Shown here: piece after piece, positions 11,036-19,839 of the stretch
Numbering within the stretch: the first letter of the stretch is position 1
Layout: each line of letters starts with the position of its first letter
Source of the DNA: Callorhinchus milii
Taxonomy: Eukaryota
Direction of reading: 5' to 3'
NCBI RefSeq assembly: GCF_018977255.1
Contig: NW_024704748.1
Span: forward strand, 27,466,001-27,530,000
Length of the DNA: 64,000 nucleotides
The notes under the pieces: generated by a model
What the model saw: only the letters and a program-made list of their open reading frames with translations
What the model was told of the DNA's origin: nothing
The model's database searches: none
Made by a program: the position numbers and the translations under genes

Positions 11036-12025
11036 CAAGCTGTAACTGTTGCAGCTTTGCTTGCAACCAAAGGATCCAATACGGAATGTAGATTGACACA
11101 CAGACATTTCTTCTTTATACTCAGCTGGGAGGACTTCTGCGGGAGGACTCCTTTTGGGAGGACACAGTGGGAGGACTCCTTTTGAGAGGACTCCTGTCAA
11201 AGCTACACTAACCGAAGGAGTTTACTGTGATCCAGCAGGTCCTTGAGTTATTGCAAGGCTTCCGTGTAGATGACATTTTCAGTTTTTCCTCCTTCGGCCA
11301 TGATGTACAGGTTTTCAGATGAACCCACATGTGAGCATCCAACATAGAACTGGCCTTGGGAAACACAGGGTATATTCAAGAAAATGGCAGCAACCTTTAA
11401 GCTCTGCCCCTGTGCCTTGTTAATTGACATGGTAAAGCATAGTCAAACAGGCAATTGGAGCCTTTTGAACTCAAACGGGCAGTCCCTTGGGAGCGGTGGA
11501 ATGAGAGGAATGAATACGTCTTTGCCTTCTTTGTTCTTCAGTTTAATTTAATCGGCCTTCTCTCTTTTGTCTGGCATTTTTATTTGTCCTTGAAAGGCTT
11601 GATCTTCGCTTCTTAGGTATCTCCCCCTAAGATTAAGAAAATGTGCTATTGGGAGGACTCCTATTGGGAGGACTGAGTGGGAGCACTGGTGGTTGGGAGT
11701 ACTCCTGTTGGGAGGACTGTAGCTCCCATGACAACCCGAAAAACCTGCCATGCATTTGTTGCAGAATATATTAGTAGAGATTTATCTCTTTACAACTGTG
11801 AGTGATTTCCTCTGTTGCTGCTTTGTTGCAGAATACCACACCTAGCTCTTATTTTGGGGCTTAATTAAAGGATTTTCTAAATATAGCTCATGACGATAGG
11901 AGATCCCTGAAAAAAAATGCCCATGACATTCCCGCATGCAAGACCAACGTCAGTCGGTTATTGCATTATTGTCGGAAACGCAGACTAGACACACACACAC
12001 AGACATTTTGTCTTATTAGTATAGA
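11036..12025 (-). mobile_element. Internally deleted Helitron with a PIF1-like helicase C-terminal remnant
   Basis: 5' end A|TCTATACTAATAAG at 12025; remnant KDVFIPLIP..DCPFEFKRLQLPV*LCFTMSINKAQGQSLKV...GQFYVGCSHVG...KTENVIYTEAL; 3' hairpin GTTGCA-N8-TGCAAC (11048-11067) then CTTG|T. Confidence 0.85.
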
Positions 12026-12269
12026 TTATATGATATAATGTATACCCTATATTATACACAGTGTATATACTGTACATAATAGTAAACAATATATACTATA
12101 TGAATGTATATATACTCTATAACAGTATACGATGTGTACTCTATATATAATACAATACTAAATGTAACAATCAGTCTAATGTATATTGTATATTTAAAGC
12201 GCTCTGAGACGCCGTCCGGCTTGAAGGGCGCTATATAAATCCAAGTTGTGTGTATATATATATATACTG

Positions 12270-12600
12270 TCATTCACTCTCTCTGAGTCACTCACTCTGT
12301 GTCACTCACTCCGTGTCACTCTGTCATTCTCTGTGTCACTCAGTGTCACTCTCTTAGTGTCACTCACTCTGTGTCACTCTCTCTGTCACTCTCAGTGTCA
12401 CTTTCTCAGTGTCACTAATTCTATCACTCTCTCAGTGTCACTCTCTCAGTGTCACTCACTCTGTGTCACTCTCAGTTTCACTCACTGTGTCACTCTTAGT
12501 GTCACTCTCAGCGTCACTCACTCTGTGTCACTCTCTCTGTGTCACTCACTCGGTGTCACCCTCTCTGTGTCACTCACTCGGTGTCACTCACTCGGTGTTG
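12270..12600. repeat. Degenerate (gtcactctct)-type repeat; duplicated at ~16615-16945 with a different arrangement
   Basis: Read directly. Confidence 0.85.
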
Positions 12601-12655
12601 CTCACACACCCCTGTACCGATGCCTGTATCCAGTGTTTCTCCTATTTGTCCCCAG

Positions 12656-12736
12656 GACGGAGGAAAGTCCATTATCTGTTTCCTGACGGGAAGGAGATGG
12701 CAGAAGAGTACGATGTCACCACCGATCAGCTCCTGG
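12656..12736 (+). CDS. DPCD: DPCD exon 2, copy A ([27 protein letters not shown])
   Basis: Near-identical to vertebrate DPCD; cccag/gtacgt boundaries; 81 nt. Confidence 0.96.
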
Positions 12737-13091
12737 GTACGTGACGTCATGTTCACCACAGCCACCCACTGCCTTGGCTTCTCTGTGAGGTTTGGACCGG
12801 GGAGTCAGAGCAATGATAACAATAAAAATAATCTTTGCATTTAATATATAATCTCACATTGGTGAAATGTCTCAAAGCACTTCACAGTAATTCCTGTGAA
12901 GTGCAGTGACTGTGTATTTGTCGCACTTGATAGAAATCTAAAAAGGAGTAAACTACAGGCGTGTGTGGGGTGGGGAGAGCCGCTAAATGAGACTGAAAGG
13001 ATTGCTTGTTAAAAGAGCAGCACAGACAGGATGGCCGTATGGCTGCCTTCCGTGCTGTAACTCCGGGTTGTTTTGTGCTGTCTCCTTGTAG

Positions 13092-13216
13092 TGAGGAAAT
13101 GGAGGGTGAGGAACGCGCTCGGAGCCCGAGGACAGTGGCAGTTGGAGGTGGGTGAGGAGGTCTCCCGTCCAGCCGGAGGCCTGGAGCAACAGCTCATCCA
13201 GGAGAGCAGCAGTAAT
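13092..13216 (+). CDS. DPCD: DPCD exon 3, copy A ([21 protein letters not shown]...LIQESSSN)
   Basis: DPCD homology; ttgtag/gtgagt boundaries; 125 nt. Confidence 0.96.
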
Positions 13217-13719
13217 GTGAGTGACAGAGAGAGAGAGAGAAGGCAGCGGGGGAGTGGGGGGACGCAAGTGGGACTGAGCTGGCTCCATCACAGGCTTTGC
13301 AACACAATGTTGGCATAAAGTCCACCATCTGTGCCGGTCTCTCGTCCGGTTGCTGAGCCGGGAGGGGCCACAGTATCCCAGAGCACTCACTGTTGATGGC
13401 AGCACAGCCCGGCCCGGCTCATCAGCAGGACCTGGAAGGGCCGACCGGTCGCTGGGGGCCGGGAATCCTCCCCCTCAGCTCCTGGTAACCCCACAGCCAA
13501 AGCCCTAACAGGAGGGTGGTCCTCGCTGGACAAGTGGTGGGAAACTTGCCAGACAGCTCTCTCGATGGCAAGCTTTGTGGTTTTAGACTCCAGGAGTTAA
13601 ACCACCTCACACACACACACACACACACACACACACAGACATACACACACAGCAAATGACTGACCGGGGTGTTGATTTGCTTCAGTAACGGCTGTGATTT
13701 ATATTTGAATTGATTGCAG

Positions 13720-17082: not shown

Positions 17083-17437
17083 GTACGTGACGTCATGTTC
17101 ACCACAGCCACCCACTGCCTTGGCTTCTCTGTGAGGTTTGGACCGGGGAGTCAGAGCAATGATAACAATAAAAATAATCTTTGCACTTAATATATAATCT
17201 CACATTGGTGAAATGTCTCAAAGCACTTCACAGTAATTCCTGTGAAGTGCAGTGACTGTGTATTTGTCGCACTTGATAGAAATCTAAAAAGGAGTAAACT
17301 ACAGGCGTGTGTGGGGTGGGGAGAGCTGCTAAATGAGACTGAAAGGATTGCTTGTTAAAAGAGCAGCACAGACAGGATGGCCGTATGGCTGCCTTCCGTG
17401 CTGTAACTCTGGGTTGTTTTGTGCTGTCTCCTTGTAG

Positions 17438-17562
17438 TGAGGAAATGGAGGGTGAGGAACGCGCTCGGAGCCCGAGGACAGTGGCAGTTGGAGGTGGGTG
17501 AGGAGGTCTCCCGTCCAGCCGGAGGCCTGGAGCAACAGCTCATCCAGGAGAGCAGCAGTAAT
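17438..17562 (+). CDS. DPCD: DPCD exon 3, duplicated copy B
   Basis: Appears identical to 13092-13216; splice sites intact. Confidence 0.9.
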
Positions 17563-18066
17563 GTGAGTGACAGAGAGAGAGAGAGAAGGCAGCGGGGGAG
17601 TGGGGGGACGCAAGTGGGACTGAGCTGGCTCCATCACAGGCTTTGCAACACAATGTTGGCATAAAGTCCACCATCTGTGCCGGTCTCTTGTCCGGTTGCT
17701 GAGCCGGGAGGGGCCGCAGTGTCCCAGAGCACTCCCTGCTGATGGCAGCACAGCCCGGCCCGGCCCATCAGCAGGACCTGGAAGGGCCGACCGGTCGCTG
17801 GGGGCCGGGAATCCTCCCCCTCAGCTCCTGGTAACCCCACAGCCAAAGCCCTAACAGGGAGGGTGGTCCTCGCTGGACAAGTGGTGGGAAACTTGCCAGA
17901 CAGCTCTCTCGATGGCAAGCTTTGTGGTTTTAGACTCCAGGAGTTAAACCACCTCACACACACACACACACACACACACACACAGACATACACACACAGC
18001 AAATGACTGACCGGGGTGTTGATTTGCTTCAGTAACGGCTGTGATTTATATTTGAATTGATTGCAG

Positions 18067-18200
18067 CCAATTTTCATGAGGAAAGACACAAAGAGTAGCT
18101 TCCAATGGAGGATCCGGAACCTTCCGTACCCCAAGAATGTGTACAGTGTGACGGTGGAGCCCGAACACAGACGCTGCCTCGTCAAAACCTCCAACAAAAA
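18067..18200 (+). CDS. DPCD: DPCD exon 4, duplicated copy B
   Basis: Appears identical to 13720-13853; splice sites intact. Confidence 0.9.
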
Positions 18201-19515
18201 GTAATAAGATTCTTCATAGCCGCGTGTTAGTGAGTAAGTGGGTGGGTGGGCGATGGAGGGAGGGAGGGAGGGATGGATGGATGCTTCAAACCACAGACAG
18301 CAGGTGGCGCTCTTGTTCTGTTTGGATGAGTTAAACCCCTGGAATTTCCCTCCTTCCTCCCTCTGTGACCTGCTAATGCCATATCAACCTGTCCTCTCCC
18401 TCCTTTCAGCGGGCTCCAGCCTGCTCCACGTCCCCTGCACCGCCCAGACCACCATCAGAGGTCGGGCCTTTAGCCTCTCTGCCTTCACCTTTGGAACATC
18501 ATCTCAGAGTCCCTTCACCTCGCTCCCTTAATAATCCCTTAAAAAAATAATGTGAACACTCAAACCATGACTGTTTGTGGGACACTGCTGTGTGCAATTG
18601 GATGCCACATATCGGCCACAAAATACACAGTCACTACACTTCAGAGTGTATTTTGTGAAGTGCTTTGAGACTTCACAACAATGTGATAAGGCACTATATC
18701 AAATGCAAGGATTATTATTATTACACTCGTTCATTCAAAATACCAGGAAATCTCAGCCAGTAGGCAGCAACTGGGGCAATGTGGAGCTGAGTGTTGGAGA
18801 CATCAAACCAAGTCTGTGTCTGTTCAGGTGGACGTTAAAGACCCCAAAACAACTGCAAAAGAGAAGGGAGTTTCTGTCTCCCGTTGTCCTGGCTGACAGC
18901 ACCCATTTTGATTGGTCATTCACTCCGTGGCTGTTTGTAGTACATTGCTCTGTGCAAATTTCGCCCAAAAAGCACACAGTGACTACACTTTACAGGACAT
19001 CCTGTGAACTGCTTTGGGACATCCTCCTGACGTGAAAGGCCTGTATCTGATGTAAGGATAACAATTATCCCTGATCCTGACACGGTGTGAGGACTGGTCA
19101 CATGTCAGGAACACTTTGCTGAGTGTCGGGTCCTACCTGGAGCCTGTGTGAGTTGCTGGCCACGTTTTCAGCCACTCCGCCCCAAAATGCTGGAACACTC
19201 TTCCTCTATCCCTTCACTTCACCCCCTCCTTTCCCATCTTCAGGTCATGCCTGAAGACCTTCCTCTTCGACCGTGTCTACGATCACTTCCCCCCGGCTCA
19301 CTGTTAAGCGCTCAGAGATGCAACCATGCGTCAGAGGGATGCTGTGTAAATGCAAGTTGTTGTTGTTAGCGCCTGGTGTTTGAGTGTGTAACCAATGTGC
19401 TGTGTTTGTTGCTGTGTGAATGGGAGGCACGAGTGAGGGCTCTGACACCAAGGCGCCCGCCCTCGTGGTGATGATTGTATCTCGCCCAGTAACGCAACTC
19501 TGCTGTGTCCGGCAG

Positions 19516-19618
19516 GTATTACAAGTCGTTTGACATTGCGGATATGGACCGGTGCCAACTCCCACTAGAGAGCTCAGCGCTGAGCTTCACACATGCCAAC
19601 AACACCCTGATCATCTCT
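19516..19618 (+). CDS. DPCD: DPCD exon 5, duplicated copy B
   Basis: Appears identical to 15178-15280; splice sites intact. Confidence 0.9.
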
Positions 19619-19839
19619 GTGAGTACTCACACACCCACACACTCATTCACACACACTCACACCCGCAAAACGGCACAGCACTGACACAGCCCTCAGGTCT
19701 GGCCGGGGGATCATGAGCCGCCCAGTCTAACTCCCACTTGGTCCTCACTCCCTGCAATACTCTTCCTCTCTGAACCCATTTTACTCCACAGGCCTGTTTA
19801 TGTAGCAGTAAGTAGGAACCCGGTTATTCATCAACCAGA

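Follow-up and report, generated by a model that had tools for sequence, protein, structure and literature searches.

The window, the whole 64-kb stretch of the Callorhinchus milii (elephant shark) assembly GCA_018977255.1 (IMCB_Cmil_1.0) that was analysed, contains the gene DPCD, with POLL (head to head) and FBXW4 as called neighbours. All features described below are on the forward strand. Exon 1 of DPCD (7684–7747) extends from the ATG to the phase-1 donor G/GTAATA, is present in a single copy, and matches the N-terminal residues of XP_042192806.1 and XP_007909581.1 exactly. Exon 6 (21481–21585), which includes the stop codon, also occurs once. Exon mapping and tblastn place two copies of each of the four exons between them: the 81-nt exon 2, which enters in phase 1 (2A, 12656–12736; 2B, 17002–17082), the 125-nt exon 3 (3A, 13092–13216; 3B, 17438–17562), the 134-nt exon 4 (4A, 13720–13853; 4B, 18067–18200), and the 103-nt exon 5, which ends in phase 0 (5A, 15178–15280; 5B, 19516–19618). 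No base differs between the A and B exons, or between the 20 nt and 10 nt of splice signal flanking them.

Splicing in the order 1-2-3-4-5-6 results in a protein of 203 residues that matches the Pfam family DPCD, PF14913, over its full length (E = 1.8e-83; score 279 bits, cut-off 27; residues 6–194 correspond to profile positions 1–188 of 189). The protein is 60–71% identical to its vertebrate orthologues, and the family is conserved and single-copy, with nearly all of 700 matches being about 203 residues long. Residues 170–203, encoded by exon 6, form the C-terminal helix and the end of the final β-strand. The linker NKKYYKSF (residues 133–140), which spans the exon 4/5 junction, matches the motif NKKYYKKF that contacts RUVBL2 (PMC13663681), and N133, K134, K135, and Y136 are shared by all of 32 vertebrates. 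A search of the PDB by sequence identified no solved structure of DPCD. The C. milii protein does not differ from the known DPCD, a RUVBL2-binding adaptor of R2TP-type chaperones (PMC13663681); only the duplication of exons 2–5 in the C. milii assembly is unusual.

The canonical 203-residue DPCD from the earlier C. milii assembly is present in RefSeq and in Ensembl/UniProt, and its exact sequence was found in UniRef/RefSeq. By contrast, RefSeq annotates the new assembly with "DPCD" (188 residues) and "DPCD-like" (168 residues), and the two truncated models, XP_042192806.1 and XP_042192986.1, are on the same scaffold. The last coding exon of XP_042192806.1 is a cryptic exon (15961–16020) that encodes VSPPKIKKMCYWEDSYWED followed by a stop; its sequence recurs identically in intron 1 at 11617–11676. 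At the syntenic locus of the shark Heptranchias perlo, tblastn identified single copies of exons 2–6 in the same order next to FBXW4, and no match to exon 1. The duplicated arrangement of exons 2–5 was absent from all other chondrichthyans examined.

Two head-to-tail copies of exons 2–5

Unit A (11157–15500; 4344 bp) comprises the 3′ 1.5 kb of intron 1, exons 2A–5A, and the first 220 bp of intron 5. Unit B (15501–19839; 4339 bp) carries exons 2B–5B and is 99.13% identical to unit A in an end-to-end alignment with 19 mismatches and 11 gap openings. The copies are direct, arranged head-to-tail, and free of Ns, and they form the sole large duplication with at least 90% identity in the window. Alignment and exon mapping thus bear out the preliminary description, which reported two colinear copies of about 4.34 kb with intact exons 2–5 and splice sites. 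A 4.3-kb repeat with 99% identity cannot be of chance origin.

The junction between the units, ATCAACCAGA/GGAGGACACA (15491–15510), is blunt, and the copies meet at 15500/15501 without Ns, filler, or microhomology. The nearest run of Ns, at 30736–30914, is 11 kb away or more. Both breakpoints are intronic and within one gene, at 11157 in intron 1 and at 15500/19839 in intron 5. The left breakpoint, 11156/11157, is inside a low-complexity stretch of the GGGAGGAC type (11125–11200). Unit B ends with an internal part of a tRNA-derived SINE (19781–19839; twin 15442–15500), and the right breakpoint is positioned 0–3 bp from the 5′ terminus of an old interspersed repeat (19840–21100, with an approximate 3′ limit). 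The same terminus is found in a copy of the repeat at 7046–7204. No target-site duplication of the repeat, which would be a sign of its recent and possibly heterozygous insertion, is present at the right breakpoint. An origin of the duplication by non-allelic homologous recombination was rejected because the flanks of the two breakpoints have no common homology. Functional RNA was sought with Rfam and ARAGORN as a possible explanation for retention of the unit; none was found inside it, and the hits outside it were all tRNA-like SINE heads.

The 19 substitutions between the copies include 14 transitions and five transversions (ratio 2.8), with four of them at CpG, and correspond to a divergence of 0.44% overall and of 0.68% over the first 2.8 kb. 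The 443 nt of exon contain none of the 30 differences (P about 0.04–0.13 under an even spread). All the substitutions are located at unit offsets 1–2779, and eight of the nine one-base indels at offsets 2998–4195; this division of the unit into two parts is significant (Fisher p = 3e-6). The 3′ 1.56 kb of unit A, adjoining the junction (13936–15500; twin 18275–19839), contains eight one-base indels and zero substitutions relative to its twin. Copy A is the deviant one in all four events that could be polarised in this segment: at 14154, 14262/14266, and 14339, copy B has the consensus of the SINE family, from which copy A departs. Therefore, poorly polished-looking sequence seems to abut the junction. 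A set of eight indels without a substitution has the character of consensus error and not of biological divergence. The variants between the copies in the first 2.8 kb are real and biological, and the last 1.56 kb has only one-base indels of the consensus type. The substitutions look allelic, and either alleles or young paralogues could account for them.

A homotype false duplication, in which the second copy would be derived from sequencing errors in the reads of one haplotype, is consistent with the indel-only differences in the last 1.56 kb. However, the first 2.8 kb, with its 19 substitutions, their ratio of 2.8, transitions at CpG, and almost no one-base indels, does not resemble PacBio error. 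The explanation was rejected, and is very improbable, because the substitution spectrum is the signature of real variants.

Predicted consequence of splicing all exons

The lengths of exons 2–5 add up to 443 nt (81 + 125 + 134 + 103), which leaves a remainder of two on division by three, and splicing of exon 5A to exon 2B therefore shifts the reading frame. The exon 5/exon 2 junction has the sequence ATCATCTCT/GACGGAGGAAAG, and the first codon of exon 3B in the shifted frame is TGA (17438–17440), as had been described previously and as both exon lengths and translation indicate. The product predicted from the ten-exon transcript has 196 residues. The stop at the start of exon 3B is followed by the exon junctions 3B/4B, 4B/5B, and 5B/6, and the all-exon mRNA is therefore predicted to be a substrate of nonsense-mediated decay (NMD) according to the textbook rule, which applies to stops more than about 55 nt (50–55 nt) upstream of the last exon–exon junction. 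The frameshift would cost the protein its conserved C-terminal helix.

The earlier claim that the 203-residue DPCD can be produced from this arrangement only by skipping four exons is correct; there are five points at which splicing may switch from A to B, all of which, owing to the identity of the A and B exons, yield a single protein. The donor and acceptor of the hybrid intron between exons 5A and 2B (15281–17001) are intact, as expected if the duplication is real; however, the NCBI models of DPCD lack the 5A-to-2B junction, which hints that no such junction occurred among the RNA-seq reads. A search with exon 5 and the frameshifted tail retrieved only exon-5 fragments from other species and none from C. 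milii, runs of which are evidently absent from the collection.

The preliminary description proposed that the gene, if the duplication is real, is a natural hypomorph or a splicing/NMD rheostat. For the latter, the duplication would have to be real and fixed or common in C. milii, with four-exon skipping setting the output of DPCD and the remaining transcripts being lost by NMD. A deeply conserved cilia and R2TP adaptor would then yield functional protein solely through obligatory four-exon skipping. Both copies could be under selection, given that the eight exons and their splice sites are intact and identical, and the level of substitution between the copies points to a certain age; both observations are permissive. 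However, identity of the exons is equally expected of alleles, "first come, first served" splicing would probably favour inclusion of all the exons, and the arrangement is not seen in the other chondrichthyans examined. The rheostat is improbable, and whatever weight it has is included in that of a real duplication, of which it is a special case. The out-of-frame arrangement and the predicted NMD substrate proposed in the preliminary description are retained; the hypomorph and rheostat found no support, and several indirect lines of evidence favour the alternative named there, two haplotypes assembled in tandem.

Possible origins: haplotype false duplication or real duplication

The second 4.34-kb copy may be the other parental haplotype, set head-to-tail with the first in IMCB_Cmil_1.0 as a heterotype false duplication (probability about 0.5). 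In that case, the animal would have a single, ordinary DPCD gene with six exons. A gapless join of two overlapping contig ends, or of an overlap mismerged by a script, may have produced the arrangement, and polishing would have left the haplotypes separate at their differences and failed over their identical parts. Assembly, and not biology, would then be the source of the frameshift, the premature stop, and the split into "DPCD" and "DPCD-like".

The pipeline is known to keep haplotypic sequence: assembly with FALCON 0.3.0 resulted in a 1.05-Gb primary assembly of a genome of about 1 Gb, duplicate heterozygous contigs were retained, an in-house script merged only overlaps of at least 30 kb and left contig-end overlaps shorter than 30 kb unmerged, and HiRise scaffolding was followed by PBJelly gap filling without later polishing (Nakatani et al. 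2021, PMC8302630, Supplementary Note 1). The literature searched on the C. milii genome contained no stated heterozygosity. A haplotype origin also agrees with the allelic-looking substitutions, none of which is in an exon, with the indel-only and unpolished-looking 1.56 kb at the junction, and with breakpoints at sites prone to breaks in alignments, namely the repeat terminus and the low-complexity stretch. Furthermore, the earlier assembly gave a canonical protein and the new one two truncated models, a frameshift is unlikely to persist in a conserved single-copy gene, and the exons of H. perlo are single. Like the heterotype false duplications described in other assemblies, the C. milii copies are near-identical and adjacent on one scaffold, carry variants that look allelic, come from an assembly without proper purging of haplotigs, and are split into a gene and a gene-like model (Rhie et al. 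2021, PMC8081667; Ko et al. 2022, PMC9516828), an annotation pattern that has been described for false duplications (Ko et al. 2022, PMC9516828). However, that class is defined by read depth and k-mer multiplicity, whereas the C. milii case is known from assembly sequence, and a gap between copies, a classical hallmark of the class, is absent from C. milii DPCD. Therefore, the case for an artefact is not closed.

A real blunt-end, non-homologous tandem duplication in the sequenced animal, with breakpoints in introns 1 and 5, is a serious alternative, with a somewhat less than even probability. It would most likely be heterozygous or polymorphic. The default ten-exon, frameshifted transcript would make the allele in effect loss-of-function or weak, leaving function to the other allele or to a minority of four-exon-skipped transcripts. 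The clean, gapless junction so far from the nearest run of Ns is in favour of a real duplication and counts against a haplotype origin, for which no documented step can be named that abuts two contigs bluntly. An overlap-layout assembler normally needs junction reads to concatenate a segment with itself. At 8.7 kb, the whole structure is below the 13.3-kb read N50 of the main library (PMC8302630), and single reads could therefore carry a real duplication; the contig N50 is 1.6 Mb. The identical 3′ 1.56 kb is where a contig break would be expected if the duplication is real, and an unpolished PBJelly fill fits the error-rich copy A. If the 1.56 kb is such a fill, reads must have run from the end of the unit into its start, and the duplication would be real. 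A further point against a haplotype origin is that PBJelly normally would not close a gap with flanks that overlap by 4.3 kb.

By contrast, the 0.68% divergence in the first 2.8 kb implies that a real duplication would be old or would have undergone exchange between homologues, and an old frameshift should have been purged by selection or be accompanied by decay of the exons, which have zero differences. The canonical model from the earlier assembly and the retention of haplotypic duplicates by the pipeline are further points against it. On balance, the evidence leans towards a haplotype false duplication over a real one.

Pathogenic out-of-frame intragenic exon duplications are known from human genes, for example the multi-exon duplications of DMD. 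The arrangement in C. milii resembles them in that internal exons are repeated head-to-tail, the breakpoints are intronic, the length of the repeated coding sequence is not divisible by three, the second copy is predicted to contain a premature stop, and skipping of the extra exons would restore the frame. However, the human cases were verified in DNA and RNA of patients, the one in C. milii is known from an assembly alone, and the C. milii copies are already 0.4% apart. If real, the duplication would be a natural out-of-frame duplication of four exons in a gene on which motile cilia depend; a heterozygous carrier state would be of modest interest, and only fixation, with rescue through the skipping of several exons, would make it remarkable. 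In the case of an artefact, the observation has practical value: RefSeq has two truncated DPCD models in place of one gene for a 203-residue protein, and an assembly whose gaps were filled after polishing can contain false duplications with no gap between the copies.

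Structure and predicted splicing of DPCD with duplicated exons in the assembly

As assembled, the DPCD gene of Callorhinchus milii, flanked upstream by POLL (minus strand) and downstream by FBXW4, contains two head-to-tail copies of a block with exons 2–5. The window matches scaffold MU249838.1 of GCA_018977255.1 base for base near 27.47 Mb. Exon 1 (7684-7747), listed as a single copy, precedes unit A (11157-15500, 4344 bp), which includes exons 2A (12656-12736), 3A (13092-13216), 4A (13720-13853), and 5A (15178-15280). Unit B follows in direct orientation (15501-19839, 4339 bp) with exons 2B (17002-17082), 3B (17438-17562), 4B (18067-18200), and 5B (19516-19618), and exon 6 is positioned at 21481-21585; all exons are on the plus strand. 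The units align at 99.13% identity, differing by 19 mismatches and 11 gap openings, and the window contains no other long duplication with at least 90% identity. Exons 2–5 and their splice signals do not differ between the copies.

Splicing in the order 1-2-3-4-5-6 produces a 203-residue protein with a full-length match to Pfam DPCD (E = 1.8e-83). Exons 2–5 total 443 nucleotides, and therefore joining exon 5A to exon 2B changes the reading frame; conceptual splicing results in a 196-residue product ending at the TGA at 17438-17440. Re-checking of the copies, exons, splice sites, frame, and stop codon established that the preliminary description was correct in all its sequence statements, including the frameshift logic. 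Both the donor and the acceptor of the hybrid intron (15281-17001) are intact, so that full inclusion of the exons would be the expected default if the duplication is real. The stop codon lies upstream of three exon junctions, so that the transcript is predicted to satisfy the textbook rule for nonsense-mediated decay. In an AlphaFold2 model of DPCD (pLDDT 83), the last part of strand 165-171 and helix 174-189 derive from exon 6, and they contain the invariant residues Y170, K172, P173, and E180. If the duplication is real, the frameshift product would lose these elements and residues, while retaining the NKKYYKSF linker, which in human DPCD contacts RUVBL2 (PMC13663681).

Gene models and related sequences

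The NCBI annotation splits the locus into two genes. "DPCD" (XP_042192806.1, 188 residues) comprises exons 1-5A and a cryptic exon inside unit B (15961-16020), and "DPCD-like" (XP_042192986.1, 168 residues) starts at a methionine in exon 2B and ends in exon 6. The cryptic exon, which encodes VSPPKIKKMCYWEDSYWED followed by a stop, is of intron-1 origin and has an identical twin in the true intron 1 (11617-11676); a GTAAG donor (16142) and an AATAAA (16208) are located 3' of it. It may be either RNA-supported or an ab initio extension of the model. Exon 5A is never joined to exon 2B in these models, and the exact 203-residue protein is recorded from an older C. milii assembly (XP_007909581.1 and A0A4W3J618). 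Both observations favor an assembly artefact, as does the low prior for the survival of an out-of-frame duplication in a conserved single-copy gene. In the shark Heptranchias perlo, exons 2–6 occur once each, adjoining FBXW4. The best match in the protein search is C. milii DPCD, and nearly all of the about 700 DPCD homologues found are ~203 residues long. These comparisons confine the duplication to C. milii, or to the present assembly.

Origin of the duplication

The duplication is most likely a haplotype duplication at the level of the assembly, a reading of only moderate confidence (probability roughly 0.5). The 19 substitutions between the units (14 transitions and five transversions, four at CpG) are real variants, not read errors, and a duplication produced by error only is very improbable. 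None of the 30 differences is exonic, and the variants look allelic, which favors a haplotypic origin but would also fit young paralogues. Six substitutions are packed into 77 bp of intron 3 (13343-13419), a local difference hotspot. All 19 are within unit offsets 1-2779, whereas eight of the nine one-base indels are within offsets 2998-4195 (two-part split, Fisher p = 3e-6). Natural sequence divergence does not give eight one-base indels without any substitution, and the indels are therefore attributed to consensus error. Four indel events (14154, 14262/14266, and 14339) are inside SINE copies with many relatives in the window, and at these positions copy B matches the family consensus and copy A deviates. 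The 1.56 kb directly left of the junction is thus poorly polished, and the abutment of low-quality sequence on the junction also points to an artefact.

The breakpoints coincide with features at which alignments break, which again favors haplotype duplication. An old repeat starts at 19840, and its 5' terminus, which recurs in the copy at 7046-7204, is separated from the right breakpoint by 0–3 bp; the unit end is part of a tRNA-derived SINE. The left breakpoint is within a GGGAGGAC-type low-complexity stretch. Blocks of haplotype-to-haplotype alignment tend to stop at repeat edges or low complexity, and by our estimate a few per cent of random breakpoints would fall so near the edge of a repeat.

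The assembly was produced from 69x PacBio RS-II data (main-library read N50 13.3 kb) with FALCON 0.3.0, followed by Quiver and Pilon, which resulted in a primary assembly of 1.05 Gb and an accessory assembly of 253 Mb (Nakatani et al. 2021, PMC8302630, Supplementary Note 1). Duplicates were removed by in-house scripts, with merging limited to overlaps of at least 30 kb; scaffolding employed HiRise with Chicago and Hi-C data, and gaps were filled in one PBJelly round with error-corrected reads, without subsequent polishing (PMC8302630). Such a pipeline, which supports the artefact reading, can leave short haplotypic overlaps and erase the Ns that usually betray them. Hallmarks of false duplications are halved depth, a gap in sequence or in read depth that separates the copies, and k-mers specific to one haplotype, and "incorrect gap filling" is mentioned as occasional (Ko et al. 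2022, PMC9516828). The DPCD junction, ATCAACCAGA|GGAGGACACA, is blunt, with no N, inserted bases, or microhomology with either outer flank. The sole N run of the window (30736-30914, 179 N) has flanks that are not mutual duplicates at 90% identity or above.

The lack of a gap between the units argues for a duplication that is real in the animal, for which the chance is somewhat below even. The 8.7-kb structure is shorter than a typical read, an overlap-layout assembler requires junction reads to place a segment beside itself, and no documented pipeline step could be named that makes a blunt join between contigs that overlap. A PBJelly origin of the low-quality 1.56 kb would require source reads that connect the unit end to the unit start. 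Most of the probability of a real duplication belongs to a heterozygous or polymorphic loss-of-function allele; a fixed, tolerated arrangement is improbable. The proposal that the duplication constitutes a hypomorph or a splicing rheostat is unsupported.

Other repeats in the window

Intron 1 of DPCD contains a palindrome of ~270 bp (7932-8203, arms ~91-93% complementary) 200 bp 3' of exon 1, and a minisatellite (9344-10320) with roughly 40 copies of a ~22-23 bp period and 60-81% identity over 300-nucleotide windows. In all three plus-strand frames the minisatellite reads as an open, proline-rich repeat (PPHLPPPHP...), and it almost certainly does not code for protein. Minisatellites with periods of ~24, 29, and 54 bp and 95-99% identity are located in or near the FBXW4 region (22689-22980, 23614-24236, and 28741-29565). 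The two copies of an interspersed element (10459-10939 and 45132-45526) are 95-99% identical, compared with 70-85% for other repeats of the window, which suggests that the element is far younger and belongs to a recently active family. Rfam and ARAGORN matches to tRNAs are present at 4016-4088, 6487-6544, 22444-22514, 30249-30321, 36482-36550, and 54477-54548. At least two of them (6487-6544 and 30249-30321) lie directly next to SINE bodies; these probably represent the head regions of tRNA-derived SINEs and not tRNA genes.
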